From the IMG/VR virus record IMGVR_UViG_3300034104_003795, positions 209,998 through 273,997 of that record: a DNA stretch of 64,000 bases. The stretch is one strand, 5' to 3'. How positions within the stretch are numbered: position 1 is the stretch's first letter; each line of letters opens with the position of its first letter. The notes beneath the pieces are model-generated. The model had not been told where the DNA came from, ran no database searches, and worked only from the letters and a program-made list of their open reading frames with translations. The position numbers and the translations under genes were made by a program. Positions 36,758 to 56,369 of this stretch are shown piece after piece.

Positions 36758-37510
36758 TTATTTTTTAAATACCGAAACTCCTTTTTCTTTTACAACTTCT
36801 CCGGCACAATAATTAGCCCAATCAATAGATTCTTCTACATTATTAGAATCCAAATACCTGGATACAAATCCGGCTACAAATGTATCACCCGCTCCACTTA
36901 CATCGGCATTTTGAATTCTTTTAGTTCCAATTATCTTACCTCTATAACTTGCTCCCCTACCGTCCAACGTAATGATACATTTATTATATAACCAATCAGT
37001 ATCTCTAATAATAGAATCATTATTTTGAGCTTCAAATCTGTTTATTTTTATAAAGGATGTGTTTTTACACCAATCACCTAAATGCTTTTTGGTATCTACT
37101 ATCGTAAATTTGGCCATAGATGATATCTTATCAATATCTTCTTCGGTTAGGAATCCCTTACAATAATCCGATATAACAACCGCATCATATTTTACCAAAT
37201 CCGGCAAATCGTAGATATCAATTCTATTTGTAGTATCATTTTCATCAACTCGCAAATATAATTCATTTGTATCTTTGTTTACATATCGTGTTTTAGTAAT
37301 ATTACCTTTATCAAAATATGTATCAACATCCAATCCCATAGCTTCTAAATTAGATGCTGTGTTGCCCGCCATTCCTTTACTCCAAACTTTTAATTCATCT
37401 ATTGGTAAGAAAACTGGTCCATTTCCTTCTGGAGATTTTCTACTTGTTATGCCATACCAAAAAATATCGGTACAAACCTCTCCAATAACTAAAACTTTAT
37501 ACTTACGCAT
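36758..37510 (-). CDS. HldE/RfaE-type heptose-7-phosphate kinase domain (PfkB/ribokinase family), stand-alone
   Basis: VLVIGE...D.F.YG..SRKSPE..PV, GMAGNTASNL, VVISDYCKG, DVSGAGDTFVAGF. Confidence 0.85.
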   Translation of the reverse strand: MRKYKVLVIGEVCTDIFWYGITSRKSPEGNGPVFLPIDELKVWSKGMAGNTASNLEAMGLDVDTYFDKGNITKTRYVNKDTNELYLRVDENDTTNRIDIYDLPDLVKYDAVVISDYCKGFLTEEDIDKISSMAKFTIVDTKKHLGDWCKNTSFIKINRFEAQNNDSIIRDTDWLYNKCIITLDGRGASYRGKIIGTKRIQNADVSGAGDTFVAGFVSRYLDSNNVEESIDWANYCAGEVVKEKGVSVFKK

Positions 37511-37892
37511 TATGTATTAAATTTGAAGTACTGAATCCTTCTATTTTTTCAAAGTATTTAATTTCTTTGGCAAATTCTTTACCTATTATTTTTTTATTCT
37601 TATACTCATCACCAATTACAAAAAAATCAGGATTGTATCTTTTAATTTGTTCTTCTAATTGTTTATCACTTCCAAATATTACAACTATATCAACACCTTC
37701 TATTTGCATTAAGTTAAACACTCTTTGACCTTCGGTATGAAAAGGTCTATCAGTTCCTTTTAGTTCTTTTACTCTAATATCAGAATCAATACCAATAACC
37801 AATTGGTCACCTAATGATTTTGCGTATTCAATTAGTTTAAAATGACCGTAGTGTAAAATATCAAAACAACCGTTAATCCAAACTTTTTTCAT
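37503..37892 (-). CDS. HldE/RfaE-type heptose-1-phosphate adenylyltransferase domain, stand-alone
   Basis: VWINGCFDILHYGH, LVIGIDSD.RVKELKG.DRPF, VIGDEY, GFSTSNLI. Confidence 0.85.
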   Translation of the reverse strand: MKKVWINGCFDILHYGHFKLIEYAKSLGDQLVIGIDSDIRVKELKGTDRPFHTEGQRVFNLMQIEGVDIVVIFGSDKQLEEQIKRYNPDFFVIGDEYKNKKIIGKEFAKEIKYFEKIEGFSTSNLIHNA

Positions 37893-39049
37893 TATAAGAA
37901 TTTTTCCAACTCTTTTATTACCATTTCAGATGTAATACTTTTAGTACATTCAAATTGTCTTTCAGTATCTTTATGGTCAGGACACCAATTCCAATCACCG
38001 GCATCCAATTTAACTCTATTAAAACATCCTTCACATTTTCCGTCAGGTGCACCAATTCTAATACAATCTTCCATCTCTGCCCATCTATAAGAGAATCCAC
38101 TTATTAATACCGTTGGTACATCTAATGCCCAACTCAACCAACTCAAACCACTACCAATACCAATAAATGCTTTTGATTTTTTCATTTCATCCATTACTAA
38201 TTCAATTGGACCGTTTGGATGATGAATTACTCCTATTGGTAATTTATTTCCCATATAGTTATCACCTTCTTTAGAAAGTAATTTTACTAAATAACCCCTA
38301 CCAATCAACCAATCAACTACTTCTTGCCAACCGGTTGGATTGTTCCAAAATTTAGATTGCGCAGTACCATAAGTTGCAATACAAACCTGTTTAATATCAT
38401 TATCTATTTTTACAGGTCTTTGTTTTACTTTTGGTTTTATTTCTTTAAATTCTAACCCAAGTATATCAGAACACATTTTTTGCATTGTTACTGATTTTGG
38501 GTCTGCTGGATTTTTGAATCCATTTACCGAACCATTTTCATTATAAAATAGTCCAACCGAATACATCGCATATAAATTAGGAACAGGTGTACCAGGTTGT
38601 ACAAACTCAATATCAGGATATTCTCCTAAAAACATATCGTTCATAAAGGTAGATACTATTACTTCACATTTATGCTGCTTTTTAAATTCTTGTACATAAG
38701 GTATCCAGGCTAAACTATCTCCCAATGCTTTTGAATCCATTGCAATATAAACTCTCTTACCTTCGGCGTTAAATACCATACTATACCATTCTACGCCATT
38801 TTCGTAAATAACAATTTTCCATTCAATAAAATACTGAATACTACATCTACACCAACAATTGTTATCTATGCTTGTTGTATAGCAAATTTGACCGGTTTTA
38901 TTATTAATAAAATCAACTTTATAATTTGCCTTCTTTGGTCCTTTAATTTCTACAAAAGGACCATTAATAAAATGTATAAGTACATTGTTATTTATTTCCC
39001 TAATGCTTTTATTATTTTTTTTAAGATTATCGTAAATCATTAACTCCAA
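37892..39049 (-). CDS. Autotransporter-type protein O-heptosyltransferase (Aah/TibC family)
   Basis: SKALGDSLAWIPY, FIGIGSGLSWLSWA...VLISGFS, and C-terminal four-Cys iron-finger CEGC...WCPDHKDTERQFECTKSIT, matching the TibC/Aah WCP.HK.T.RQFECT..IT motif. Confidence 0.85.
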   Translation of the reverse strand: MELMIYDNLKKNNKSIREINNNVLIHFINGPFVEIKGPKKANYKVDFINNKTGQICYTTSIDNNCWCRCSIQYFIEWKIVIYENGVEWYSMVFNAEGKRVYIAMDSKALGDSLAWIPYVQEFKKQHKCEVIVSTFMNDMFLGEYPDIEFVQPGTPVPNLYAMYSVGLFYNENGSVNGFKNPADPKSVTMQKMCSDILGLEFKEIKPKVKQRPVKIDNDIKQVCIATYGTAQSKFWNNPTGWQEVVDWLIGRGYLVKLLSKEGDNYMGNKLPIGVIHHPNGPIELVMDEMKKSKAFIGIGSGLSWLSWALDVPTVLISGFSYRWAEMEDCIRIGAPDGKCEGCFNRVKLDAGDWNWCPDHKDTERQFECTKSITSEMVIKELEKFL

Positions 39050-41575: not shown

Positions 41576-43573
41576 TTATTCAAAAACAGCAGATGCACAA
41601 TTTCTACATATAGTTTCGTATGATTGTTTTATCTTTTGGATATGTTCTTCATTACCCCAAAAATCTCTTAATTCTTGTGTCTGTAAGTTTCCAAATTTAA
41701 AATCAAAATCATAATCGTTACAACATAGGAAAGCATCACCATTTGCGTTTACATGCACCCATCCGATTGGTCTACCACCAACTTCTCTACCATTACCACA
41801 ACCGATAACTTTTTTACCTTCATTGTTTTTCATTAAGTTTCGTTGTATCGCCGGACCGTTTGTTATAACTTCATCCAATAATCCCGCTCTATCAATAAGG
41901 TAAGGTACTGTGAATATATTTACACCAGGAAATAATTCTCTTGCTTTTTTCTCTTGCTGAACTAATTCTCCACTTTGTACATTTAAGTCAATATCCGATG
42001 GAAATTGCTCTCCTTTCTCTAACCATCCACCCTTATTACCAAACGATAATTCATGTACACCATTTATCTGAATAGAGAACGCCTTTCTTTGAACCATTTC
42101 AGGTAATTGCTCTACTGCGTATTTAATGTTTGATATTAATTTATCAAATTGTTTTATATTAATACCACTTCGTTTACTCCAAGTTTCTGCATCAAATGCC
42201 GGAGTATTTAAACATATACCACTTAAACAATCCTGATATTCTTTTAATATATCAACTTTTTCAGGTGTTAATGGAATACCATTTGAAAGTACCATTGTTA
42301 CCAATTTATACTTTCTACATATTTTTAATATTTCTTCAAAATGTGGATACAAAAGAACTTCGTTGTAATGTGCTGTATAGAATCCATTGAATGATTTACT
42401 AACCAATCCATCCGGTCTTTCTCTTTCATCTATAAGATTTTTTATAATTTTTTCAAATAGTTCCGGACTCATTACCGCTTTACCTTCGGTTGGATTGCCT
42501 TTATATTTTACAGGACAATACCAACACTTTGCATTACATACGCCATATGGGTCTATTTGTAAGTTTGTAATTTTATATTTGTTAAAATCATTTTTAATTT
42601 TACTCTCATCAGTTTGTTCAATTAAAATAGATTTATTTGCAGTTTCACATATTTCTTTCCAATAATAAGAAGAAGCATATTTTTCACTTATATTTAATGG
42701 TTCGTTGTATGGAAGTTTATCAGTAAAAGCTCCTTTATAAAATAAACCCTTTGAATACGAATGTATATGAGTTGAATCCGCTACAACTCCTGCATTGTGT
42801 AGTATAGGATATTTTTCTACTTCCGAAATATCACCAGTTACCCACCCAAAATCCAATCGTTCATCTACTATCGTTTCATGTCCCGCTAACCAAGCATTCC
42901 AAAGAAGTGCCCACATTCCCGCAGTCCATTTTTGTATTGGATAATCATATTCACTTTTCTTAACATGCAAATGTTCAGTATCACAAAAATATTTATATAG
43001 ATTTATACTATCGGTTTCTACTTTATCCCAAAATTCATATGTTGTGTTTTTAACAATATATTGTGCTCCACCTGAATTGTTATTTAGTAGTTTGGGTATT
43101 AACGGGTCTATTCCAACTATTTCACACATCTTTTTATAAATGTGTTCACCCTTACCTATTATATAATCATAATTTATATAAAATTTAGTATTAGATAAGT
43201 ACCAGCTATTACCCCTTATCATATCATCAAATTTGGGTGTCTTTGTCAAAACTATATCCGAATCATGTAAAAATAAAACATCATCTTGTATTTCAGTTCT
43301 TGCTGCAATATGTTGCTTCATCAAATTGAAATAAATAGATGGTTGATATCCTTTATCAGTTCTAGTATCATTATAAAAGAAAAAACGAACACTATTATAA
43401 TGTAGCATCAATTTTCGCCATTCGTCAGGAATTACACCATTTTCTATTCCACAAACTATATCAATGTAGTTTGGGTTTACTCCCATTTTTTTAAAGTTAT
43501 TAATTAAAACTTCAACTTGCCAAGTATAATAAGTGATTGCCGGTTGGCAACATATATAACGTAATTTTTTCAT
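41576..43573 (-). CDS. Fusion: N-terminal GT-A-like (DxD) putative protein O-glycosyltransferase + radical SAM + SPASM/twitch domain
   Basis: N-term YYTWQVEVLINNF...YQPSI...LFLHDSDIVL; radical SAM CNAKCWYC; C-term CGN...WVHVNANGDAFLCCND...FGNL...CRNC. Confidence 0.75.
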   Translation of the reverse strand: MKKLRYICCQPAITYYTWQVEVLINNFKKMGVNPNYIDIVCGIENGVIPDEWRKLMLHYNSVRFFFYNDTRTDKGYQPSIYFNLMKQHIAARTEIQDDVLFLHDSDIVLTKTPKFDDMIRGNSWYLSNTKFYINYDYIIGKGEHIYKKMCEIVGIDPLIPKLLNNNSGGAQYIVKNTTYEFWDKVETDSINLYKYFCDTEHLHVKKSEYDYPIQKWTAGMWALLWNAWLAGHETIVDERLDFGWVTGDISEVEKYPILHNAGVVADSTHIHSYSKGLFYKGAFTDKLPYNEPLNISEKYASSYYWKEICETANKSILIEQTDESKIKNDFNKYKITNLQIDPYGVCNAKCWYCPVKYKGNPTEGKAVMSPELFEKIIKNLIDERERPDGLVSKSFNGFYTAHYNEVLLYPHFEEILKICRKYKLVTMVLSNGIPLTPEKVDILKEYQDCLSGICLNTPAFDAETWSKRSGINIKQFDKLISNIKYAVEQLPEMVQRKAFSIQINGVHELSFGNKGGWLEKGEQFPSDIDLNVQSGELVQQEKKARELFPGVNIFTVPYLIDRAGLLDEVITNGPAIQRNLMKNNEGKKVIGCGNGREVGGRPIGWVHVNANGDAFLCCNDYDFDFKFGNLQTQELRDFWGNEEHIQKIKQSYETICRNCASAVFE

Positions 43574-43596
43574 AACTTTTAAAATTAATTTTTATT

Positions 43597-45045
43597 TTAC
43601 AAACACAATGCACAATTAACTCCAATTGCAGAAGGAGTAAACAATATATAATTATTTGGTCCAGGATAAGCTCCTAATCCAACCACAGACCACGTTTCTC
43701 CAGCATAGGATACGCAACCAGGACTACTTCCCGCAATAGCCTCAAGTGTATATTGAGCTCCGGTATATGCTCCTGCACCAGTACAAGGTTCATAATCCCA
43801 ATATTCATATACAACAGCCGATGTTGTTGTTGTGGTTGGTGCAGATGGACACGAACTACAATTCGTTCCTACATAACTAGAACCATCACCCAAATCAATA
43901 TCAAATGAAGGACCAAATGTAATACCAGTTAATCTTACACAAACATATGCGGTAGCAGTTTCAAATACACTATTAACTACCTGGTCAACGGTAAATCTAA
44001 CAACACCGGCACTTATAGCAGTATCACAGTATTCAGCGCTAAAATAGAAATAAGATGGCCCTGCGGTTGTGGTTGTTGTAGTTGTTGGTGCAGCTGTGGT
44101 TGTTGTAGTTGTTAGCGGTGTTTCGCAACCATACGCTATACATTCCTCATATGATGTGTAAATACCATTTCCAGTTCCAACATTTGTACATGTACCAAGA
44201 ATACAATCCCAATCCAAAGATGCAGCTGCTGTTGTAGTTGTAGTTGTTGTAGGCGCTTCCGTAGTTGTAGTTGTTGTAGGCGCTTCCGTAGTTGTAGTTG
44301 TTGTTGCAGCTTCCGTTGTAGTTGTAGTAGTAGCTGCTTCCGTTGTAGTTGTAGTAGTAGCTGCTTCCGTTGTAGTTGTAGTAGTAGCTGCTTCCGTAGT
44401 TGTAGTTGTAGTTGGTGCCGCGGTTGTTGTAGTTGGTGCCGCAGTTGTTGTAGTTGTGGTTGTAGTTGTAGTTGTGGTTGTAGTTGTGGTTGTAGTTGTG
44501 GTTGTAGTTGTGGTTGTTGTAACAGAAAGACAAGTACCCTTATCGTTTAATACACCATCATTACTTATAATATAATAGTTTGTTCCATCTGAATAATATC
44601 CATTTGATGCAATCGTAGTTAATCCACTATTTGTAAAAAGTTTTGTACTTTCGGTTAGTGTTACTCCCCCATACGAATAATACGTTGTTGGGGAAAGTGC
44701 AAAATCATAACAAGAGTTTCCAGCAGAAGATGCATCATATCCTAAACTAAATGAAGATGGTGCTAATGTTGTAGTAGTTGGTGCGTTAGTTGTAGTTGTA
44801 GTTGTGGTTGTTGTAGTTGGTGTAAATTCACTAGTACCCATACAATCACTACTACCACCTTGTAAAAGTTCTATGGTTGCACCAGCTGGTGCTGCTATAC
44901 TACCGGGTTGTGCTTCTATCACTACCGAATTTAAAGTTTCACTTAAAAAAATAGATGGTCCAGTAAAGCCTTCACACTCTAACCAAGACACATTTCCACT
45001 AGTACTACTAGCTAACGTTACTCTATATATGTTTACAGTTGGCAT
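43597..45045 (-). CDS. Mucin-like Thr-rich protein with Cys-containing domains (482 aa), probably virion-exposed
   Basis: Run of ~26 Thr plus six (EA[A/P]TTTTTT) units, further T-runs, Cys-rich domains between them; no signal peptide evident. Confidence 0.75.
   Translation of the reverse strand: MPTVNIYRVTLASSTSGNVSWLECEGFTGPSIFLSETLNSVVIEAQPGSIAAPAGATIELLQGGSSDCMGTSEFTPTTTTTTTTTTNAPTTTTLAPSSFSLGYDASSAGNSCYDFALSPTTYYSYGGVTLTESTKLFTNSGLTTIASNGYYSDGTNYYIISNDGVLNDKGTCLSVTTTTTTTTTTTTTTTTTTTTTTTTTTAAPTTTTAAPTTTTTTEAATTTTTTEAATTTTTTEAATTTTTTEAATTTTTTEAPTTTTTTEAPTTTTTTTAAASLDWDCILGTCTNVGTGNGIYTSYEECIAYGCETPLTTTTTTAAPTTTTTTTAGPSYFYFSAEYCDTAISAGVVRFTVDQVVNSVFETATAYVCVRLTGITFGPSFDIDLGDGSSYVGTNCSSCPSAPTTTTTSAVVYEYWDYEPCTGAGAYTGAQYTLEAIAGSSPGCVSYAGETWSVVGLGAYPGPNNYILFTPSAIGVNCALCL
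44230..44520 (-). repeat. 27-nt tandem repeats and ACN-codon run encoding poly-Thr
   Basis: gttgtagttgtagtagtagctgcttcc x3 and gtagttgtagttgttgtaggcgcttcc x2; 44443-44520 is all Thr codons. Confidence 0.9.
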
Positions 45046-45055
45046 TTATTATTAA

Positions 45056-45514
45056 TTAAAAAGGTATTTGACCTAATATTTCAGTTGGCCATTTTTCTCT
45101 TATTTGAACCAAATTAGTTATATCTGAAAAATCAATATTTGTCAAATCTCTTAATTCTTGTTTTTTTGTAACTATTTCTTGAATTAATGTTTGATTTCCA
45201 GTTTCCAATACCCTCATATATTGTAAATCCAAATCAGGAAATAATTCACTCCTTTTGTATCTCACATAATTTAAAAATAATTCTTTTGCCTTTTCTAAAT
45301 TTAAAGATGGAATCGCAGTTGAACCATTCTCATCATCAAAATTAAAATCATAACAAAAATTAAATGGATAATCAATTTGAGAATCATCATACATAAAAAC
45401 ATAATTTGAATTCAATGGAATTACATTTTTGATTATAAAATCAATAGTTTCTTCATTTGATGATGTCCATTTGATTTCACCATTTTTTTCACTTATAATT
45501 ATTTTTGGTTTCAT
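45056..45514 (-). CDS. Tail fibre assembly chaperone-like protein (152 aa)
   Basis: C-terminal VRYKRSELFPDLDLQYMRVLE...KKQELRDLT...WP pattern typical of phage fibre assembly chaperones; downstream of a large tail gene. Confidence 0.6.
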   Translation of the reverse strand: MKPKIIISEKNGEIKWTSSNEETIDFIIKNVIPLNSNYVFMYDDSQIDYPFNFCYDFNFDDENGSTAIPSLNLEKAKELFLNYVRYKRSELFPDLDLQYMRVLETGNQTLIQEIVTKKQELRDLTNIDFSDITNLVQIREKWPTEILGQIPF

Positions 45515-45529
45515 AAATTATTTATTTTT

Positions 45530-48500
45530 TTATCTTGATAATACCACAAAATCAACAATTTCAGGTGACTGATGTCCTCCTAGATTACCACCGATATATG
45601 TTGTTGCAATACCAGGACTACTATGATTAGGTCTTTCTATTCTAAAAGAAAATCCAGTAGTACTTTTTCCAGTAATTACAGCAATACTTCCAACTTCCTG
45701 AGTAGCGTATGTTAAATTTGATGTTGTAAATAAAATAATATAATCATTGGAATCTAATGCGGTTGTAAATACGATATCATAGATATTGAATGACCCTATA
45801 CTAAATGAGGTACTAATATTATAACGATTTAGAATAGTATATTTTGTAGTATCAGTAATTCCTCCACCATTATATCTAATTGTTCCAAACGCTTTTACTG
45901 CTGGTGGGTATCCATATCCATTACTAAATCTGGATATTGCTCTATCCACCATTAAACTACCCGTAATTTCATTTGAGAAACTATAAGAACCACTTATACC
46001 ATCTCTTACTCTTAAATACTTATCATCTGCTAAAACGGCTTGGAAACCACCACCGTTTACAACAGTACCCGCGGATACCGTTTTTATTGTTATGGTTCCA
46101 GTAGAAGATAAAACAAAACTAGTTTCTGCTTCCGAATCAATTCCAAATGGCGGATATGATGGTAATGATGTATCTATACTTTGGTTTTGCACAACAACTC
46201 TTAAAGTTAAATAATATGTTACACCTTGTTGTAAATCCGCAATTAATGAAAATTTAGTCGCTGGTAGCTCCATTTGGGCTGCAGCCGCAAAGTAATATGT
46301 ATCCCAACCAAATCCATTCCAAACCTGATAAGTTTGTATGCTCCCATTTGCATATGCCGTTGCGTAATTTGATTGCCCAACAAATTCGGTAAAAAATTGC
46401 GGTGCATGGCCTGTTTTAGTTAGTTGTAAATTTACGTTTATACCAGCTGCCGCATCACCAGTAGCCCTTGCATAGCTGGAACCGTTAAATGGCATTGTGT
46501 AAGTTATAATGTGTTGTCCAGATGCTCCAGCGGTGAATGAACCTCCAGATGATGGTATTATATAATAGTCATAGGAAATAAGTCCGTAAGATGGAGGAGC
46601 ATATGTTCCATCATTTGGAACTGCATTAGTTTGTAATGACGAAGTTGATACAGTTGGTAAAGTTGCAGAAGAATATGTTACACCAGTTGGGGATGGTAGT
46701 GTTAATTGTGTATTTGCAAAGAATCTTAAACTACCAGAATCATCAAATACGGCAATAGATTCGGATGGGTCTGAATACAATTGTATATTTTGATTTGCTG
46801 ATATTATAGAACCTTCTCCGATTGTCCATCCACCAATCTGTCCATCATTTGAGCTAATTGAACCCTGAATGGTTAAATCTTCTCCATTCCAAATCAATGA
46901 ACCAGATGTACCTATTAAAGATACTTTTGGTTGAGATGCATCGAATCCTATAAAAATACCAGGATTATTAAATCCTTGCACTTGTGATTCCGTTACCCAA
47001 CTACCAGGACCTATACTAGAACTTATTTGTCCGATTGAAATGTATGGATTTGCATTTGAACCACTTTCATTTGCGTTAAGAACAATAAGTGCGTTTGCAC
47101 CCTTTGCACCAATATTGATACTTTTATCAACATATTGCTCAACTGCAAATAATACATCAGTTGCTACCGAACTAAATTGTGCACCAAATGTAGTCCAGTT
47201 TGCGTTTGGTGGACTGCCCCAAATTGTACCAAGTTGTCCATTCTTACTCGTATCATTTACCAAATAATAGGTACTACCTTGTTTTACAATATCTCTCCTT
47301 TCAGTTGTATGGAAATAATTTGTACTGGTACTAAAGAGACCTCTATATACTACACCGGCTCCGTTCGCTCCGTTTGTTCCACTTACGCCAGATGTACCAC
47401 TTACACCAGATGTACCTGCTGCTGCATATACTGACCAACTATTAGTTGCGTTTGGTGGATATCCTGTATCAATATTAGTATTATTTGTTGAAGTATGTGA
47501 AACTCCACAAATATAACTTGCTCCACCATATGTTACGGTATCATCTTCGTAATATGTTGTTGCAGTTTGCCAAGCTCCTCTAAAAGAACCTTCTGGTATT
47601 CCAGGTTGTCTTTGTCTAATACTACCAACTATCGTTAATTGGTCTCCATCCCAAAACATGCCTTTGCCAGATGTACCAGTTGTTTTAATTGAAAAACGTC
47701 CTGTTGTACCATTTGTACCATCTTCATATAATCCCAAGAAAACACCAGGTCTATTATATCCAATAATTCCTGGAGTTGTCAATGATGTTCCACTTGTACC
47801 CGCAGTTCCTTGTGTACCGGTTTGACCAATTGCAATGTATGGGTCTGGTCTTCCACCTGCAATTACAATATTTGCAAATGCACCACTACCATCTTTAGTA
47901 CCAACATTAATTGTATTCTTAACATATGATTCTTGGAATATTGCAATTTGTGCTGCAACAAAGAATTCTTCATTTCCTAAATACTGCCAATATGCATTAT
48001 CACTTGTTGTACCGGTTGGTGCTTGAATTCCTGCACCCGTACCAGGACCACTTTCTTGAATTGCACCATAGTATTGTGTTACGTTTCCATTTGTAGCAGG
48101 GTCTGGATGTATTACGGCATCTCTACGATTACCACTTATATCTGAACCTATGTAATCTATGTCATTTTTCCAAATTCCTCTCATCACAATTCCAGGTCCA
48201 GTATTTCCTTCATATTGAACCGATAACGATTGTGTTTTATATAAAAAATCTCTACCTTCGCAATCAATCTGATATACGATAAATGCGGTTTGATTTACTT
48301 CAGGATTTAACCATTGAGTAATTCCACCCATAACCGCGGGAGAACCACTTACAAATGAACCAGCGGTTAAACTTCCAGATAAAGTAATGTGCGCAGATTT
48401 TGCGTAAATACTTACTCTACATTTTTCTTTCCATCCGGCTTCACCATACATATCAGTATGAGTTTCTTGCCCTGCAATTAAAGAAGCACTATTAACTAGT

Positions 48501-51500
48501 TCAACATCACCTCTATAAACATTTATAGTTGTTGGTGTTAAATTGTATTCAATTTCACCAGATACACGATATATAATTGATGAGTTTTCATTTGTTAATG
48601 TTGCATTATATGGTGCAGGTGCAGTTATTTGAGAACTAAATGATTGTGAATAGAATTCAGATTTTCTACCATTTTCAAAATCAACTTTATAAACAACCGT
48701 TCCCGCAGTATTTACCGCCGGTGCTACCCATCCAGAAACATTTCCTATTTCAGCAGGATTTCCTAATAATCTATTCTGTGGATTTACAGTAATGTATGAT
48801 GACTTTGAATGTATAGATGCAGAATAATATCCTAAATTTCCAATTGGTAAACCGGAATTAGGTCCATATTCATAATATACAACTTGCGAAGAAACATACG
48901 AAGATGTGTGTATTAAAGGTACTCCTGCTTTAAATGCTCTAATTTGTGTTCCACTACCGGTAAAGGCAGTTTCCCATAGAGAAACTTGAATAGAAGTGTT
49001 TTCGTTTGTTACGTTTGCAGTAAAAGAATCCGCTCCAGCTTTTACACCAAATATAGTAATCTCATCAACCGCTCGTATTATATCAGATGCAGAACCATCT
49101 CTCATTTCAACTCTGAAAACTGCAGTTTCGCCTGCAGAAGTTGCATCGGAAGAACCAATGCTGATTTGGTCAGTAGTACTTATACCATAACCCAAATCTC
49201 CATATGTTGCAGAATCTGGATCGTACTTAAACCATTGATAAAATGCCTGTGAACTTGTTATATTAATTGGTGTTGCAGTAAACGTTATATCTCCAACAGG
49301 TGAAATAACTACCGTATCACCATCAAAGTTTACAGTGTTTGTACTTGTTGATAGTTTAACTGTTCTTGCTTTTACAGCATCCGAATTTTTAGTGAAACTT
49401 TGTGTTGCAAATAAATTAACCGAACCAGTTCTATGTCCCGGTAATAAAGAATATGGATATACTCTTAAATTATAGAAAGCACTTGCCGATACATACGGTG
49501 GTAAGAAGTTTGTATAATTCGCACTACCGATTCTCGTTGGTGTTGTAGAATTTGGAGATGAAATGGATGCCGTTTGTATGTTACTTCCAGTAATCGATTG
49601 GAAATACCAAGTACCTCTTTGTTGAGAACTCGTATATATTAGATACTCATTTCCTTCCTTTAATTGTATTGATGTACTAGCCGGTGCATATGTTCTTATA
49701 TATCCAGTTTCAAATGCGGATAATATTGCATTTTGTGGACTGATTAATATTTCAATTGGTGGTGCCCCATCAACCGCTTTGGTAAAGTTTTGAACTAAAC
49801 TTTGTGTATATTTTGATGAAGTGAAATATGGATGAATTAAGAGGTCATAAGTTAAACTCGCACTTAACTCAGTCATATTATTAATTCCAGTTAGTAATAA
49901 CGATGAGGTATTGTTAAAATCAACGGAACCGGTTGATATCATTGATTGTGTCACCGTATTTAACCAGAAATTACCAGGTTGCTTTGATGAACTAAATGCC
50001 AAATACCTTGCACCTTGTTTTAATTTCAATTCAGTATTTGCCGGTGTATATGTTGCAACATCTCCCTTTGCATTTGCATTTAATGTTACATTGGAAGGTG
50101 TCAATTCAAATACTATACTTTCATCACCAGGTTTACCTTCAGGTACAATAGTAAATGTTTTATCAATACTAATTTCGGTTAATGTGTAAGGTTCGGTATA
50201 AGTAAATGTTGCAACTAATACTTTGCTTTGAGATAACGGACTTCCAATAAACGCAGATGGTAATCTTGCAGGTAAACTTCTACCAGCTTCATCCGCTGCA
50301 ACAATTGATATATTGGAATCTTTACTTTGACTAACCCAATACAACCAATATTCTGGTGCAAAATCTGTATTAATTGACATTGATGGATATACCAAAATAG
50401 ATGCCGATATTGGATTCTCATTTGTACCTCTTAAATAAAACGATGCAGTTGCAGATGCGGATACCGGTCTAAAATCAGTTTCATTTCTAAAATTAATTGT
50501 AAAAGTATCGGTATTGTATGTCACAACCGGTGTATCAAGACCATCTTGCAAATCTTCTAAAATTTGTGATGCTAAAACCGATGCCGATGTATTAAATGCC
50601 CAATCCGATGCCGCTGATGCCGAAGATATTAAATAAATTGTTCTTCTCTTATCAATTGAATCTCTATTAAATGTTGCATTAAAATTAATTTCACCAGTAC
50701 CCAACGTACCTTTTGTCAATCCTTGAACAAATCCACTAGCGGATGCATATTGTAAATTTACAAATTTTTCAAAAGGAGCAGAACCGCTAAGTACGTGAAG
50801 TTGTATTAAATTCCACCCTCTATCTGGTCTTGAACCACTATAAAGTTCAATATCATTTATACCATCAATTCTTACTGCCTGAATTTCTAAAGATGCAGTA
50901 CTACTATTTCTAATTTGAGTTCCTCTATAAGGTCTAATAATATGATTAACTCCACCAAACCCATCTAATACTGCGGTGATAGTTACCGTATCGGTTACGC
51001 CTTCACACTCTCCCGTAAATGTTACCAACTGAACATCTATATCACTTCTACTACCAGTAAAATTCCCAACAGTTAAAACCGGTATATCTGGATTTGTTAA
51101 ATTTAATGTACCAGGAAATGTACCACCAGCATATTGCGATGCCGATAAAACATTTCCAAAGAAATCAATAGAAGATGATGTGAAGTTTACAGAACCAGTT
51201 AATAAAGTTTTTTGAATATTAAATGCAATTGCAGTTGGTGGTATAGGTTGCGAACCCGAATCAAATTGAAAATATAAAGAAGTTGGATTTAAACTTAATT
51301 TTTTCTCAATTCTTTGAATATTTCCACCATCAAATTCTTTAGATGCTTCTACATTAACCGGAATGTAATTACCATTTATATCATAAAATTTAAAAAGATA
51401 ATCAAATCTTTCAGATACCAAACTTCTAGGTACTGATTGTACCACCGTTAATTCGTTAGGTGAGAATGATGTTTCTTGAGATGCTTTAATACTAATATCT

Positions 51501-52969
51501 GAAATATACCATTCAGTTCCTTTTACATCTACATAAAGTTTTGCATTATCAATTTGTTCAGCTTCAAAATTTTCAGATATCAATACCTTTTGTAATACCT
51601 GATTATTTGCCTGAATTTTAGTAATCAGTTGTTGAACCGGAACTGTTACAGAAGGAAATGCACTTCCTAATGAATTTGAAGATTGTCTAGAACCACTTAT
51701 GTAAAACTCAATATAGTCATCGGTTGATGTTATAGATTTTTTTCTTACATTGAAATCCAAAGTATATTCTCCACCGGTATTTAAACTAAACGATTGCGTT
51801 GTATGGAAATACCCTACACCACTTGCAACATTTAGTTCGGCAGAATTATACAAATAATTTTGATTAAATGCTACCGTATTATTAGAAGATGATACCCAAT
51901 AGTTTGAAATTATATCACCGGTTAGGATACCATAATTTTCTTCATTCTTATCAGTAGTATTATAATCTTTTAATATTTCATTTGATTCTAACAATACCTT
52001 TTGAACAAACTCAAAATCGCCAATCTTTGACCTAGACTTTCGGTAGACATCAACCGATACAACATCACCAATAAAAGTTGTTAAATCAGATATTGTAATT
52101 TTTGCAAATGAGCCAGTTAATGCCGTTTTTAAATTAGAAGTACCTTCAAGATGTTGAAATGATGCGGTGTATCCTATATTATCAAAACTTTCTACGATAC
52201 CATTAATTGTATATGGGTCTGATGTTAGTACTTCTTTATTAGTAACTATTTGTGTAATTAGTGGATTATAGTTTAATCCCGGAACCGATAATCTTGTATT
52301 TAATACGGAACCCGTCCAATTGGTATTATCCTGTAAGGTTAATCTATATAATGTTGGTAATGTATAATCACTTAACTTTTGTCCAGATTGTGGAGTTATA
52401 GCAGTACCGTCCAAACTACCAGTTTGCACTATTGTTGGTATCGTTGTTGAAAACAAAGGTTTTACTAATTCATCAATTGTTACCCTAGGTCTTCTATAAA
52501 ATCTAACTCTATCTTCGTTGGCTAAAAGTTTATTAACTTTTATTGTTTTTTGCCACTTAACATTATATACACCCTTCCAATCATCCGGAATATCTCTTAC
52601 AACTTTACCATCATCCAAATATTCTTTAAGTTCACCTAAAATAGTAATAGTAGCATCTCCAATAGGAGTATCATCGTAAATATGTACCGATACAATCTTT
52701 GAAGTACCCTCATAGTATTCAGGAATACCATTACCAGGTTCCCAATATATAGGATTACCCTCAACATCCAAAATTTGTATTTTAATTTCGGTTGTTTCTT
52801 TTAAAAAAGGACTACCTTCTATTAGAAATCCATTTTTACCACCAGTAAATGTTTCTTTTAATTCGGTTATTCTGAAATATGTTGAGTTTGCATCGGTATC
52901 AGAAACAAACGTTCCGAAAGAACTAAGCGGTTGTGGTAATACTTCTCCGTATTTTTTTATCAATGGCAT
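45530..52969 (-). CDS. Very large tail/baseplate-associated structural protein (2479 aa)
   Basis: ORF track; beta-rich, Ser/Thr/Gly-rich; repeated LTNEN.S and RG.W...Y...D.V modules; short GTSG tracts; C-terminal AVKAFGTI..Y.I..N.Y fibre-like end. Confidence 0.75.
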   Translation of the reverse strand: MPLIKKYGEVLPQPLSSFGTFVSDTDANSTYFRITELKETFTGGKNGFLIEGSPFLKETTEIKIQILDVEGNPIYWEPGNGIPEYYEGTSKIVSVHIYDDTPIGDATITILGELKEYLDDGKVVRDIPDDWKGVYNVKWQKTIKVNKLLANEDRVRFYRRPRVTIDELVKPLFSTTIPTIVQTGSLDGTAITPQSGQKLSDYTLPTLYRLTLQDNTNWTGSVLNTRLSVPGLNYNPLITQIVTNKEVLTSDPYTINGIVESFDNIGYTASFQHLEGTSNLKTALTGSFAKITISDLTTFIGDVVSVDVYRKSRSKIGDFEFVQKVLLESNEILKDYNTTDKNEENYGILTGDIISNYWVSSSNNTVAFNQNYLYNSAELNVASGVGYFHTTQSFSLNTGGEYTLDFNVRKKSITSTDDYIEFYISGSRQSSNSLGSAFPSVTVPVQQLITKIQANNQVLQKVLISENFEAEQIDNAKLYVDVKGTEWYISDISIKASQETSFSPNELTVVQSVPRSLVSERFDYLFKFYDINGNYIPVNVEASKEFDGGNIQRIEKKLSLNPTSLYFQFDSGSQPIPPTAIAFNIQKTLLTGSVNFTSSSIDFFGNVLSASQYAGGTFPGTLNLTNPDIPVLTVGNFTGSRSDIDVQLVTFTGECEGVTDTVTITAVLDGFGGVNHIIRPYRGTQIRNSSTASLEIQAVRIDGINDIELYSGSRPDRGWNLIQLHVLSGSAPFEKFVNLQYASASGFVQGLTKGTLGTGEINFNATFNRDSIDKRRTIYLISSASAASDWAFNTSASVLASQILEDLQDGLDTPVVTYNTDTFTINFRNETDFRPVSASATASFYLRGTNENPISASILVYPSMSINTDFAPEYWLYWVSQSKDSNISIVAADEAGRSLPARLPSAFIGSPLSQSKVLVATFTYTEPYTLTEISIDKTFTIVPEGKPGDESIVFELTPSNVTLNANAKGDVATYTPANTELKLKQGARYLAFSSSKQPGNFWLNTVTQSMISTGSVDFNNTSSLLLTGINNMTELSASLTYDLLIHPYFTSSKYTQSLVQNFTKAVDGAPPIEILISPQNAILSAFETGYIRTYAPASTSIQLKEGNEYLIYTSSQQRGTWYFQSITGSNIQTASISSPNSTTPTRIGSANYTNFLPPYVSASAFYNLRVYPYSLLPGHRTGSVNLFATQSFTKNSDAVKARTVKLSTSTNTVNFDGDTVVISPVGDITFTATPINITSSQAFYQWFKYDPDSATYGDLGYGISTTDQISIGSSDATSAGETAVFRVEMRDGSASDIIRAVDEITIFGVKAGADSFTANVTNENTSIQVSLWETAFTGSGTQIRAFKAGVPLIHTSSYVSSQVVYYEYGPNSGLPIGNLGYYSASIHSKSSYITVNPQNRLLGNPAEIGNVSGWVAPAVNTAGTVVYKVDFENGRKSEFYSQSFSSQITAPAPYNATLTNENSSIIYRVSGEIEYNLTPTTINVYRGDVELVNSASLIAGQETHTDMYGEAGWKEKCRVSIYAKSAHITLSGSLTAGSFVSGSPAVMGGITQWLNPEVNQTAFIVYQIDCEGRDFLYKTQSLSVQYEGNTGPGIVMRGIWKNDIDYIGSDISGNRRDAVIHPDPATNGNVTQYYGAIQESGPGTGAGIQAPTGTTSDNAYWQYLGNEEFFVAAQIAIFQESYVKNTINVGTKDGSGAFANIVIAGGRPDPYIAIGQTGTQGTAGTSGTSLTTPGIIGYNRPGVFLGLYEDGTNGTTGRFSIKTTGTSGKGMFWDGDQLTIVGSIRQRQPGIPEGSFRGAWQTATTYYEDDTVTYGGASYICGVSHTSTNNTNIDTGYPPNATNSWSVYAAAGTSGVSGTSGVSGTNGANGAGVVYRGLFSTSTNYFHTTERRDIVKQGSTYYLVNDTSKNGQLGTIWGSPPNANWTTFGAQFSSVATDVLFAVEQYVDKSINIGAKGANALIVLNANESGSNANPYISIGQISSSIGPGSWVTESQVQGFNNPGIFIGFDASQPKVSLIGTSGSLIWNGEDLTIQGSISSNDGQIGGWTIGEGSIISANQNIQLYSDPSESIAVFDDSGSLRFFANTQLTLPSPTGVTYSSATLPTVSTSSLQTNAVPNDGTYAPPSYGLISYDYYIIPSSGGSFTAGASGQHIITYTMPFNGSSYARATGDAAAGINVNLQLTKTGHAPQFFTEFVGQSNYATAYANGSIQTYQVWNGFGWDTYYFAAAAQMELPATKFSLIADLQQGVTYYLTLRVVVQNQSIDTSLPSYPPFGIDSEAETSFVLSSTGTITIKTVSAGTVVNGGGFQAVLADDKYLRVRDGISGSYSFSNEITGSLMVDRAISRFSNGYGYPPAVKAFGTIRYNGGGITDTTKYTILNRYNISTSFSIGSFNIYDIVFTTALDSNDYIILFTTSNLTYATQEVGSIAVITGKSTTGFSFRIERPNHSSPGIATTYIGGNLGGHQSPEIVDFVVLSR

Positions 52970-53056: not shown

Positions 53057-53233
53057 ATGAAAAAATACGCTATGATTCAAATTGATGCTGAAATACATCA
53101 ACTTTTGAAAGAGTTTTGTAAAGAGAAAGGATACAAAATAAATGGGTTGGTGGAAACCCTTATAAAAGAAAAGGTAGAAGCTTCAAAGAAACCTCTACCT
53201 AAAAATATATTACCAGTTAGTTCTAGAACTTAA
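53057..53233 (+). CDS. Ribbon-helix-helix DNA-binding protein (58 aa; only credible plus-strand gene; missed by ORF track)
   Basis: MKKYAMIQIDAEIHQLLKEFCKEKGYKINGLVETLIKEKVEASKKPLPKNILPVSSRT*: alternating beta strand, helix, G turn, helix as in Arc/CopG/MetJ. Confidence 0.75.
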   Translation: MKKYAMIQIDAEIHQLLKEFCKEKGYKINGLVETLIKEKVEASKKPLPKNILPVSSRT

Positions 53234-56200: not shown

Positions 56201-56369
56201 CTAATTTAGCATGTGCAATATCACCTGCCAAATAAATAAGAGAATCTTCCGTACCTCTATTACGAATTTCCTCAAACATTTTTTCAAATACACCTCTAAA
56301 TTCTTTGTGCCTCTTTACATTACGAATATGAATATCCGCGATGTGGTAAATCTTTTTTAATCTACTCAT
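53223..56369 (-). CDS. Fused Mre11-Rad50 (SbcD-SbcC, T4 gp47-gp46) recombination nuclease/ATPase
   Basis: Phosphoesterase ADIH, AGDIAH, GNHD, FHG, GDIH; Walker A APNAAGKSS; zinc hook CKFC; signature CSGMEKF; Walker B VIDEGFGTLD; H-loop ISH. Confidence 0.92.
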   Translation of the reverse strand: MSRLKKIYHIADIHIRNVKRHKEFRGVFEKMFEEIRNRGTEDSLIYLAGDIAHAKLEMSPELLKEISWLLTECTKHCETILIAGNHDCNMNNSDRLDVLTPIVEALKLPNLHYLRDTQVYAIGDVDFAVFSIFDNKDNWPKADTLFGNKKIALFHGPVDHSQTDIGYVVSSRHFTTDMFDGYDLALLGDIHKRQELISPKGCKCVYAGSLVQQNFGETLDKHGFLVWDLDTLTYEEIDIKNDYGYYTMDIIAGVVPDVTDLPTYPRLRVRFSETDAADTKKAITEIKMKYGVEDFTVIKTDSLQKKKTGDRDNQLELEDITDINYQNSLITDYIGRMMPFATPEDIAGIQSLNKEINSRVVLDDIARNIQWKPVRFEFSNMFSYGEDNVINFDKVNGLMGLFAPNAAGKSSLFDAISFCLFDKCSRAFKAANIMNNRKADFHCQLDFQVEGVEYSIRREARIVNKGKNVKVDVQFWKIVDGVSESLNGTERRDTNQVIETYVGRYEDFVMTALSLQGNNALFIDKSQSDRKDLLAQFMGLDIFDKLYETASEEIKEVAVLIRNFKRTDFTSELATKETDLQTKNEELKELNGMLKADSDSKEKIQNQISDLKESIVPIDSKLELQSLEDLKGVIKDKIEINKTNRTDKQTKILEYQYLLGEVSQSINEHTEVNGMSIDDAKKQWDSLKGQISDVQQQIDKLEAQYESNLEKLKHLEQHEYDPNCKFCMNNVFVKDAIATKEIVVTQEKELEELNLTHGALIKSIQPYSDVDSVWDKLLELRNKYQKGVVVSEKAEAELDGLKTHYELLLTQLDNVQSDIRRYYDNQATIEKNKAINEDIKKLETDKKQLEILIKETNRKILNLTGEIGSIESYINTTKNKIQEVKDLEIKNDLYTYYLDAVKKDGVPYELITKALPAIENEVNNILGQVVDFSISMDTDGKNINARIVYEDQEWTLEMCSGMEKFISGLAIRVALINICGLPRPNFLVIDEGFGTLDADNLSSLFMMMQYLKTQFDFIWVISHLEQMRDIVDGLIEIKKVEGFSKIKF

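Follow-up and report, generated by a model that had tools for sequence, protein, structure and literature searches.

What is the function of a phage protein that contains 26 consecutive threonines? The question arose from a 64,000-nucleotide stretch (hereafter, the window) of a 274-kb virus record from lake water (IMGVR_UViG_3300034104_003795, positions 209,998 to 273,997). The window contains capsid, portal and terminase genes. The likely host is a freshwater Flavobacteriia member, by analogy with the nearest capsid relatives. An initial annotation made from sequence alone had described a mucin-like protein in which poly-Thr stalks, encoded by slippage-prone tandem repeats, separate Cys-rich domains. 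It proposed that the Thr runs, which would be poorly soluble without sugars, become glycosylated bottle-brush spacers displaying small disulfide domains, and that repeat number could vary between isolates and tune the reach of those domains. We asked whether the architecture is real, whether the Thr runs are linkers, and whether their surroundings indicate that they are modified.

Architecture of the protein and its gene

We found that the description of the sequence was correct. The open reading frame at 43597-45045 on the minus strand is open for 482 codons and encodes a protein (P0001) with 140 Thr (29%) and 16 Cys (3.3%). In contrast, the other long open reading frames of this phage have 6.9% Thr and 0.72% Cys. 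The longest run is exactly 26 Thr. It is followed by two AAP-T units and then by six 9-residue units (residues 218-271), four of EAA-T6 and two of EAP-T6. From the Thr frequency of the proteome, approximately 4e-26 such T26 runs are expected by chance. No other open reading frame of at least 100 amino acids in the 274-kb genome has any homopolymer longer than 6. The cysteines fall in five non-repetitive modules, each with an even number (2, 2, 4, 4 and 4). The parts of the gene, all on the minus strand, are as follows.

43597-45045 (-), coding sequence of the 482-residue modular protein P0001, with spacers of 10 nt and 23 nt to the co-oriented neighboring genes
44821-45045 (-), N-terminal module (residues 1-75), Cys24 and Cys68, fast-evolving
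44758-44820 (-), linker 1 (residues 76-96), T10 (residues 77-86), NAP, T4, LAP
44521-44757 (-), module B (residues 97-175), Tyr-rich, with an NGYYSDGTNY motif and Cys112 and Cys172 near its two ends
44443-44520 (-), the T26 run (residues 176-201), with a 12-nt sub-period (ACA ACC ACA ACT)
44230-44442 (-), AAP-T4, AAP-T6 and six EA(A/P)-T6 units (residues 202-272), encoded by 27-nt tandem repeats
44314-44394 (-), three letter-identical 27-nt units (EAA-T6 x3) within that array
44113-44229 (-), module C (residues 273-311), LDWDC-x4-C ... C-x4-C, 4 Cys
44065-44112 (-), linker 3 (residues 312-327), T6-AAP-T7
43837-44064 (-), module D (residues 328-403), 4 invariant Cys, ending in C-S-S-C
43822-43836 (-), linker 4 (residues 404-408), T5, of PPPxP type in relatives with Pro linkers
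43600-43821 (-), module E (residues 409-482), 4 invariant Cys, with a C-terminal CxxC; this module defined the first set of homologs

Tandem Repeats Finder reported a 27-nt period over 44234-44435. Three of the units are identical and the others form a second sequence variant.

Repeat length had been proposed as a point to compare among reads and related genomes, and we did both. Contigs from public short reads (k=31) reproduced the flanks exactly in three runs from separate studies (43496-44263, 44368-44494 and 44488-45800), and no indel variant was listed. However, these contigs break inside the identical 27-nt units and inside T26, so the exact copy numbers rest on the original assembly alone. 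Between relatives, both repeat number and module content differ. We compared P0001 with the syntenic genes in two related loci, L005 and L014. The gene in L005 has T27, about eight EAP-T6/7 units and no module C. The gene in L014 has another architecture again. The T27 run of L005 is encoded with an unrelated pattern of synonymous codons (12 of 26 positions match, 10.3 expected), which argues for constraint on the protein and not on the DNA. The N-terminal module is only 37-38% identical to the L005 and L014 orthologs, compared to about 70% for modules B, D and E. Module C is 87% identical to the copy in L014.

The protein family and its neighboring enzymes

P0001 belongs to an unannotated family that we found only in uncultured phages. 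Searches of the region and of P0001 with blastn and tblastn against 50,697 GenBank phage records found nothing. Pfam, PHROGs and NCBIfam gave no hit for P0001. Among 60 family members searched against Pfam there were only single stray domains and low-complexity 'Mucin' hits (PF01456, 3 relatives, E of 4e-4 or weaker). Literature searches for poly-threonine phage proteins, phage prolyl hydroxylases and heptosylated virions found no description of this family.

We found that the Thr runs are interdomain linkers. In a survey of 99 family proteins, the modules recur in different orders and numbers with low-complexity linkers at every junction. Thr-rich, APTPTPA and PPPPT linkers occur at the same junctions, although modules D and E together are 59-73% identical across these proteins. 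One relative, P0008, has almost pure poly-Pro linkers (81 Pro and 14 Thr in 104 linker residues), indicating that a dense Thr array is not essential to the family. Module B is the commonest module, with 213 copies in 86 proteins, mostly with 2 Cys and always separated by such linkers, and an alignment of it has invariant columns. A profile of module B found 430 representative clusters, and in long members it co-occurs with Laminin_G_3, Collagen and SprB. The N-terminal module is present in 31 proteins. Module C always has 4 Cys.

Searches for known folds gave no match that stood out. A phmmer search of the modules against PDB sequences found nothing meaningful, and an Atlas feature search with module B found only unnamed viral clusters. 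In an AlphaFold model of modules D and E, module E was confident (pLDDT about 85-89) and module D was not. Foldseek against PDB and BFVD, a wide VIA-align search and a shape search of the ESM Atlas gave at best Z 4.1, for module E, to L33-type zinc ribbons. This is only a hint that the 4-Cys modules could bind metal. No Ig-like or other known decoration domain, as in Hoc-type phage proteins, was detected in the family searches or in the predicted fold of module E.

The gene lies between a giant fiber-like gene and a predicted glycosylation block.

45530-52969 (-), 2479-residue fiber-like protein directly upstream, with tail-fiber PHROG and CBM5/12 hits
45056-45514 (-), 152-residue protein (phrog_20196) between the fiber gene and the P0001 gene, 83% identical in L005 and absent in L014
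42614-43573 (-), GT-A glycosyltransferase domain (phrog_4417, 3e-63) of the adjacent 665-residue protein
41576-42613 (-), radical SAM/SPASM half of the same protein (PF04055 and PF13186), 68% identical to a separate 342-residue gene in locus L009
39040-41208 (-), 722-residue fusion of GT1 and methyltransferase (and a weak GT25)
37892-39049 (-), 385-residue TibC/Aah-type protein O-heptosyltransferase
36758-37892 (-), split HldE-like pair, a PfkB kinase (rfaE domain I-like) and a nucleotidyltransferase (rfaE domain II-like), both below the equivalog cut-offs

The phrog_4417 domain (residues 1-320 of the 665-residue protein) is predicted to fold as a GT-A glycosyltransferase. A profile of the domain found nothing among PDB sequences. 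In contrast, its AlphaFold2 model (pLDDT 91) gave 214 Foldseek hits at E<=1e-3. All 50 hits listed are sugar- or sugar-phosphate-transferases, nearly all GT-A glycosyltransferases, with the GT24, GT8 and LARGE1 catalytic domains at the top. An H103-D104-x-D106 motif is invariant in 20 sequences.

The 385-residue protein scored 271.6 bits with TIGR04414 (cut-off 200) and matched TibC (4rap) at E 2e-53. The catalytic Asp110 and the iron-finger Cys339/342/358/370 of TibC (PMC4358343) all align to identical residues in the phmmer alignment to 4rap. This is the one neighboring enzyme with a firmly assignable class of protein substrate, and its characterized members modify Ser, not Thr, in beta-helical passengers (PMC4358343). 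P0001 has 43 Ser but no recognizable passenger repeats. The target here may be the fiber or another protein. In Microcystis phage Mel-JY01, the homolog of this enzyme lies next to a Ser-rich structural protein, although that protein is not homologous to the fiber of the window.

We found that the adjacent enzyme co-varies with linker type. The order of giant fiber gene, linker protein and enzyme block is conserved, and a giant protein occupies the upstream place in all related loci that reach far enough. In the six loci with Pro-containing linkers (Pro-type: L002/3, L004, L007, L008, L010 and L011), the adjacent gene encodes a PF13640 protein, a collagen-type prolyl 4-hydroxylase. The L002 copy matches solved prolyl 4-hydroxylases from B. 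anthracis (5e-25), human (C-P4H), Chlamydomonas and PBCV-1 (1e-11). In contrast, in the five loci with Thr linkers (Thr-type: the window, L005/6, L014, L009 and the contig encoding P0010), the adjacent enzymes are the phrog_4417 domain plus radical SAM/SPASM, either fused or as separate genes. The genome of the window contains only a remote 2OG oxygenase, about 200 kb away. The GT1/methyltransferase fusion is conserved in Pro-type relatives, whereas L005 and L014 carry a shorter, 551-residue GT1 there without a methyltransferase hit. This co-variation rests on about eleven loci from a few lineages.

The linker protein and its neighboring enzyme appear to have moved between phage backbones as one cassette. 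In a tree of the heptosyltransferases, the window groups with Pro-type loci (82% identity) and not with the Thr-type L005 and L014 (71%). Nevertheless, its GT-A/radical SAM gene is 88-92% identical to theirs. More distant family members sit beside other glycosyltransferase cassettes. One of these (in locus L016) starts with PF11397, a GT60 polypeptide/Hyp GlcNAc-transferase family.

Are the linkers modified?

With moderate confidence, we suggest that P0001 is a beads-on-a-string protein of a freshwater jumbo phage, most likely a virion fiber or decoration protein, and that its linkers are substrates of the enzymes encoded next to it. In this view, O-glycosylation of Thr would turn the linkers into extended, protease-resistant stalks, and in relatives with a prolyl 4-hydroxylase, hydroxyproline would be the modified residue. 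The linker-coding repeats also seem to act as sites of recombination and slippage through which unit numbers change and whole modules are gained, lost or swapped. Module B is the likeliest binding unit, as it is the commonest module and is found elsewhere with lectin-like and collagen-like fiber domains. Our analyses establish the anatomy of the protein, its family, the synteny, the co-variation of linker type with enzyme and the enzyme family assignments. In contrast, glycosylation, location in the virion, the binding role and the state of the cysteines are inferred. No cultured phage in the GenBank set carries the family and hence no proteome exists. The phrog_4417 family is also far larger than the linker-protein family (915 hits, often fused to methyltransferases), so the substrate of the GT-A domain need not be P0001.

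The interpretation offered by the initial annotation was thus supported only in part. P0001 is a phage protein, its Thr runs separate independently conserved Cys-bearing modules, repeat number differs between relatives, and the comparative context favors glycosylation. However, the analysis did not demonstrate glycosylation, presence in virions, disulfides or the solubility argument. The protein has no signal peptide and is made in the cytoplasm, so that disulfides could form only after lysis. Because the 4-Cys modules end in CxxC patterns, metal sites are not excluded. A search of the genome for an Erv1/ALR sulfhydryl oxidase gave no signal, but neither did the control genomes. 'Mucin-like' describes composition only.

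Our results might also indicate that the Thr runs are plain, unmodified spacers and that the neighboring enzymes act on the giant fiber (Ser heptosylation), phage DNA or host envelope glycans. This is the strongest alternative, although we consider it unlikely. It is consistent with the Ser specificity of TibC-type enzymes on beta-helices, the gene pair in Mel-JY01, the breadth of the phrog_4417 family (about ten times that of the linker-protein family), the poly-Pro linkers of P0008, and the fact that phage glycosyltransferases are known to glycosylate DNA (bioRxiv 10.1101/2023.12.21.572611). However, it does not readily account for the switch of the adjacent enzyme with linker chemistry or for their apparent movement together between backbones. 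A prolyl 4-hydroxylase beside Pro-rich linkers has an obvious candidate substrate next door, and unrelated glycosyltransferase cassettes, including the GT60 family, abut distant family members.

It is much less likely that the radical SAM/SPASM enzyme matures P0001 itself, for example by Cys-to-Thr or other thioether cross-links of the ranthipeptide/sactipeptide type that would staple the modules in the reducing cytoplasm. SPASM radical SAM enzymes such as AlbA, anSME and CteB typically modify peptides, the enzyme is adjacent in every Thr-type locus of this phage group, and P0001 is unusually rich in both Cys and Thr. However, modules D and E occur with the same cysteines in Pro-type relatives that lack the radical SAM gene, and all NCBIfam radical SAM hits are far below their cut-offs. 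In the wider family, the GT-A domain is fused alternatively to methyltransferases or to radical SAM, which fits modification of the sugar better than modification of the protein. In addition, P0001 is a five-module protein of 482 residues and not a short leader-bearing precursor with clustered Cys, as in the RiPPs matured by radical SAM/SPASM enzymes (sactipeptides, ranthipeptides and SCIFF).

Least likely is that the repeat lengths reflect an assembly artifact or a recent neutral microsatellite expansion: the identical units, the 12-nt sub-period, the breaks in the k=31 contigs, and the (ACN)n DNA of many other organisms in the same lakes (with a depth spike at 44416-44516, making mis-joins conceivable) allow it, but a separately assembled relative has T27 and a similar array at the same place with different codons, linkers at these junctions are universal in the family, the frame stays open, and the flanks are reproduced exactly in three runs.

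A broader possibility, which we hold only tentatively, is that freshwater jumbo phages build their own glycoprotein stalks in two chemistries that can be swapped as cassettes. One would be a 'mucin-type' version with Thr homopolymer linkers and a GT-A/radical SAM enzyme, and the other an 'extensin-type' version with Pro/Thr linkers and a prolyl 4-hydroxylase. Both lie upstream of a largely shared glycan-synthesis block that includes the TibC-type enzyme. In this view, the linker-coding repeats double as recombination sites that shuffle the displayed binding modules. This would be a phage-encoded system for post-translational modification of virion appendages, with no described counterpart in bacteriophages.

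If the linkers are modified as the neighborhood suggests, phages can make mucin-like and extensin-like glycoproteins on their own, in the bacterial cytoplasm, with matched enzyme-substrate cassettes. This would add a class of virion surface chemistry that bears on adsorption, resistance to proteases and grazing, and particle stickiness in lakes. It would provide compact enzyme-substrate pairs (a GT-A/radical SAM fusion with poly-Thr, and a prolyl 4-hydroxylase with PT repeats) for testing polypeptide O-glycosylation and prolyl hydroxylation in bacteria. It would show low-complexity linkers acting as shuffling sites for binding modules at a likely host-interaction locus. It would also give a candidate protein target for some of the glycosyltransferases that large freshwater Bacteroidota phages are reported to carry as core genes with unknown targets (PMC12619734).

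Comparison with known systems

The closest architectural parallel is the Pro/Thr-rich linkers of modular bacterial and fungal carbohydrate-active proteins (cellulases and CBM-bearing enzymes), which are often O-glycosylated. There, as here, low-complexity P/T segments join small, independently folding modules that often carry disulfides, and linker length and composition vary between homologs while the modules are conserved. Some family members have classical APTPTPA linkers. In contrast, the linkers of P0001 are almost pure Thr, up to 26 in a row. P0001 is phage-encoded, has no signal peptide and no catalytic or known CBM domain, and has putative dedicated modification genes beside it.

Like mucin-type O-glycoproteins, which carry dense O-glycans on the Thr/Ser of PTS tandem repeats, P0001 has Thr-rich tandem units encoded by slippage-prone repeats and flanked by Cys-rich modules, and a polypeptide glycosyltransferase family (PF11397/GT60) lies next to a distant family member. 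However, there is no sequence relationship, synthesis is cytoplasmic, and glycosylation of P0001 is inferred from context alone.

Hydroxyproline-rich glycoproteins (extensins) and the viral prolyl 4-hydroxylase of PBCV-1 with its Pro-rich repeat substrates (Eriksson et al. 1999, cited in PMC7019647) resemble the Pro-type relatives, whose adjacent enzyme matches that of PBCV-1. In one of the Atlas look-alike clusters of the GT-A domain next to P0001, 10% of members carry the HPAT (Hyp O-arabinosyltransferase) family, which is a lead only. The locus in the window has no adjacent prolyl 4-hydroxylase and its linkers are Thr-based, and hydroxylation in the relatives is inferred.

In the bacterial autotransporter heptosyltransferase systems (TibC/TibA and Aah/AIDA-I), the enzyme corresponds to the 385-residue neighbor, and ADP-heptose-type activation genes are alongside. 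The known substrates are Ser residues in beta-helical passenger repeats and not Thr homopolymers, so P0001 is not an evident substrate.

Serine-rich repeat adhesins of Gram-positive bacteria (PsrP, GspB and Fap1) also have a long stalk of hydroxy-amino-acid repeats next to dedicated glycosyltransferases such as GlyE, and GlyE is among the structural matches of the adjacent GT-A domain. In P0001, Thr homopolymers replace the Ser dipeptide repeats. The N-terminus, MPTVNIYRVTLASS, has no hydrophobic signal, and there is no accessory Sec system or LPXTG anchor.

Finally, virion glycosylation in mycobacteriophages (Freeman et al. 2023, cited in PMC12619734) also involves phage-encoded glycosyltransferases next to structural genes, with virion proteins as the proposed targets. 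There, the glycans sit on C-terminal extensions of capsid and tail-tube proteins. Here, the candidate is a separate modular protein with long Thr stalks, and the enzyme set is different (GT-A/radical SAM, TibC type, and prolyl 4-hydroxylase in relatives).

Anatomy and genomic setting of the poly-threonine protein

We found that the poly-threonine gene is real and strongly non-random. The ORF at 43597..45045 on the minus strand is open for 482 codons, and its product (P0001) contains 140 Thr and 16 Cys. In comparison, the other long ORFs of the phage have 6.9% Thr and 0.72% Cys. P0001 contains a run of exactly 26 Thr (residues 176-201), followed by AAP-T4, AAP-T6, and six nine-residue units, EAA-T6 four times and then EAP-T6 twice. 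Further runs are T10, T6/T7, and T5. The units are encoded by 27-nt tandem repeats, three of which (44314-44394) are letter-identical, and the T26 run has a 12-nt sub-period. Approximately 4e-26 such runs are expected by chance, and no other ORF of the genome has a homopolymer longer than six. The cysteines lie in five non-repetitive segments in even numbers (2, 2, 4, 4, and 4), here called modules N, B, C, D, and E. A 128-aa ORF at 44147-44533 is simply another frame of the repeats. The initial annotation had described threonine runs, 27-nt repeats, and Cys-rich segments at this gene, and that observation held in every detail.

The gene is part of a phage genome from lake water. The 274-kb virus record, of which the window is the last 64 kb, is rated complete by CheckV. 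GC content is 33%, and nearly all genes are on one strand. The window encodes a T4-type major capsid protein, a portal, and a large terminase. The nearest cultured capsid relatives are those of Flavobacterium phage immuto and Microcystis phage Mel-JY01, at about 52% identity. The DNA occurs in at least 24 lake-water (or unlabelled) metagenome runs from 23 studies. The phage may belong to the freshwater jumbo phages of Flavobacteriia described as 'moraphages', which carry four core glycosyltransferase groups of unknown target (PMC12619734). There is no Shine-Dalgarno sequence before the ATG of P0001, and the leader (45046-45075, minus strand) is A/T-rich (ttaataataaATG). This is consistent with a Bacteroidota-type host, as are the GC content and the Flavobacterium phage capsid relatives.

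P0001 is packed between co-oriented genes, with spacers of 10 and 23 nt. Upstream lie a 2479-aa fibre-like protein (tail-fibre PHROG, CBM5/12) and a 152-aa protein. Downstream lies a sugar block that also includes a GT1 + methyltransferase (+ weak GT25) fusion and a 982-aa nucleotidyltransferase/DUF5661 protein. The members of this block considered further below are:

41576-43573, minus strand: 665-aa protein, a fusion of a predicted GT-A glycosyltransferase with a radical-SAM/SPASM enzyme
37892-39049, minus strand: 385-aa TibC/Aah-type protein O-heptosyltransferase
36758-37892, minus strand: split HldE-like kinase and nucleotidyltransferase pair

A strong terminator-like hairpin lies just upstream of the fibre gene. 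The fibre gene, P0001, and the 665-aa gene are thus plausibly one transcription unit. A 13-bp-stem terminator-like hairpin at 53200-53172 follows the gene for a single 1048-aa protein (53223-56369, minus strand) that fuses an SbcD-like phosphoesterase to an SbcC/Rad50-like ATPase. The window also contains an open frame of at least 3948 aa that runs off the window start (3-11846, minus strand) and a 1386-aa collagen-like tail-fibre protein (15498-19658, minus strand). The phage invests heavily in very long fibre-type proteins.

A phage-only family of modules joined by low-complexity linkers

We found that the poly-Thr segments are interdomain linkers of a modular, phage-only protein family. A word search with the C-terminal 157 residues of P0001 found ten proteins of 276-838 aa, and five viral contigs. 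These share modules D and E, with all eight cysteines invariant. In contrast, the linkers differ and are of TTTTAAP type, APTPTPA type, or PPPPT type. A search with residues 1-175 added 88 proteins. We cut all 99 proteins at their linkers and clustered the pieces. Module B is the common bead, with 213 copies in 86 proteins and up to five in tandem. It is about 83 aa long and Tyr-rich, carries the motif NGYYSDGTNY, and has one Cys near each end. Different N- and C-terminal modules accompany it. Thr-rich linkers are the rule in this family. However, T-runs elsewhere reach only 11, so the T26 of the window and the T27 of the related locus L005 are the extremes.

A profile of module B finds 430 representative clusters in a library of 1.84 billion proteins. 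In long members, module B occurs together with Laminin_G_3, collagen repeats, a beta-propeller, and SprB repeats, the usual components of phage fibres and adhesins. None of the family libraries searched names any of the modules. In addition, SprB-like repeat modules form a separate 705-764-aa gene upstream of the short PT-linker proteins (L003, 5458-7575), whereas in the family members P0003 and P0008 they are fused into the linker protein itself. This is further evidence of module shuffling at this locus.

We detected no structural relative of modules D and E. The best hits were weak matches to L33-type zinc ribbons. P0001 has no signal peptide, and the 4-Cys modules carry CxxC or Cx4C pairs. 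Their cysteines may bind a metal, or may oxidise only after lysis. The 2-Cys modules (N and B) fit a terminal disulfide clasp better.

Linker type and the neighbouring enzymes

We found that the linker type tracks the adjacent enzyme. In all six related loci with Pro-containing linkers (L002/3, L004, L007, L008, L010, and L011), the next or next-but-one gene encodes a 164-187-aa PF13640 protein. The copy in L002 matches solved collagen-type prolyl 4-hydroxylases, namely those of B. anthracis (5e-25), the human C-P4H alpha-2 catalytic domain, Chlamydomonas, and PBCV-1 (1e-11). In contrast, in the five Thr-type loci of the same phage group (the window, L005/6, L014, L009, and the contig carrying P0010), that place is taken by a phrog_4417 domain plus a radical-SAM/SPASM enzyme. 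The two are fused as 665 aa in the window, L005, and L014. They are separate genes in L009 (3956-6902), where a Mannosyl_trans3-like GT lies between them. The genome of the window has only a remote 2OG oxygenase, a 197-aa 2OG-Fe(II) protein about 200 kb away (G000:C1:55355-55597 of that genome, outside the window). It is 25% identical to the L002 enzyme and scores just below the Pfam cut-off.

The phrog_4417 domain is predicted to be a GT-A glycosyltransferase. It models with pLDDT 91 and gives 214 Foldseek matches at E<=1e-3. All 50 rows listed are sugar- or sugar-phosphate-transferases, nearly all of them GT-A glycosyltransferases, including the UGGT catalytic domain, LARGE1, glycogenin, COLGALT1, and GlyE of the pneumococcal serine-rich-repeat pathway. 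H103-D104-x-D106 is invariant, consistent with a DxD motif. The GT-A family is very large (915 hits) and is elsewhere fused to methyltransferases. The radical-SAM/SPASM half could act on the sugar, as these alternative fusions would suggest, or it could instead act on the protein. The first seems likelier.

We asked whether the association between linker and enzyme reflects one inherited split, and the tree of the shared heptosyltransferase indicates that it does not. In this tree the window groups with Pro-type loci (82% identity) and not with L005 and L014 (71%), and the linker-type label needs two changes in every bootstrap tree. Yet the 665-aa enzyme of the window is 88-92% identical to those of L005 and L014. 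So the linker protein and its adjacent enzyme appear to have moved together between backbones. More distant family members are again flanked by GT cassettes. L015 has GT2, GT25, an epimerase, and an APS kinase. L016 has PF11397, the family of the GT60 polypeptide/hydroxyproline GlcNAc-transferases, followed by GT2, a TylF methyltransferase, and GT10. APS kinase genes sit at the end of the GT cassettes next to family members in L009 (6935-7405) and L015 (15161-15631), which would fit sulfation of the glycans. These associations are the strongest evidence that the linkers are enzyme substrates, although this evidence remains circumstantial.

The sequence of the 385-aa neighbour indicates that the phage very probably heptosylates a protein. 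The neighbour passes the curated equivalog cut-off of TIGR04414, the Aah/TibC protein O-heptosyltransferase (271.6 bits against 200), and aligns to TibC (4rap) at 2e-53. The catalytic Asp110 and the four iron-finger cysteines (339, 342, 358, and 370; residues from PMC4358343) are conserved. The PfkB kinase and the nucleotidyltransferase beside it resemble the two HldE domains that make ADP-heptose, although both score below the equivalog cut-offs. Together these genes are a complete-looking protein heptosylation cassette in a phage. However, TibC and Aah modify Ser and not Thr, and they act on beta-helical passengers (PMC4358343). In Mel-JY01 the homologue lies beside a Ser-rich structural protein. 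We therefore do not assign P0001 as the substrate of this enzyme, and the fibre is at least as likely.

Evolution of the repeats and comparison with known systems

We found that the same genomic slot contains three architectures, whereas the flanking enzyme stays 88-92% identical across the three loci.

Table. Module architecture of the linker protein in the same genomic slot
Locus: Architecture
window: N-B-C-D-E
L005: N-B-D-E
L014: N-B-X-X'-C-Y

The gene in this slot in L014 (9001-11049, encoding P0136) carries an extra module with a H...C..H....M pattern (GHPFWIKT ... YNCQFHSAMAG) that recalls type-1 copper (cupredoxin) sites. Pfam gave no hit, and this resemblance is an impression at the level of the motif only.

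Unit numbers also differ, with six E-units in the window and about eight in L005. T26 and T27 share no more synonymous third positions than composition predicts (12 of 26, with 10.3 expected). In contrast, third bases in module B are identical in 35 of 54 conserved codons. Length and Thr identity are thus maintained while the DNA turns over. The linker DNA seems to serve as a site both for slippage and for module exchange. The suggestion in the initial annotation that repeat number could vary is supported between relatives. This support does not extend to variation within a population, because the public runs are k=31 contigs that break in the identical units, and for the same reason the copy numbers given here are those of the assembly alone. 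Summed contig depth in four lake metagenomes jumps about 100-fold over the T26-coding stretch (44416-44516), indicating that many other organisms in these lakes carry (ACN)n Thr-run coding DNA.

Taken together, our results define a new, unannotated phage protein family, in which the Thr stalks are the Thr-rich end of a P/T linker continuum. The anatomy of P0001 and the existence of the family were established directly from the sequences. In contrast, virion location is inferred from gene position and from the domains that accompany module B, and glycosylation is inferred from context only. The interpretation in the initial annotation, that the runs become glycosylated stalks, is partly supported. 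It is the best-supported mechanism, and we consider it somewhat more likely than not. The main alternative, that these are plain linkers and that the neighbouring enzymes are unrelated to them, appears unlikely on present evidence but might still be correct. In our reading, the protein works like PT-linked modular proteins, mucins, and extensins, but it is not a sequence member of any of them. It differs from the one documented case of phage virion glycosylation in both substrate architecture and enzymes.
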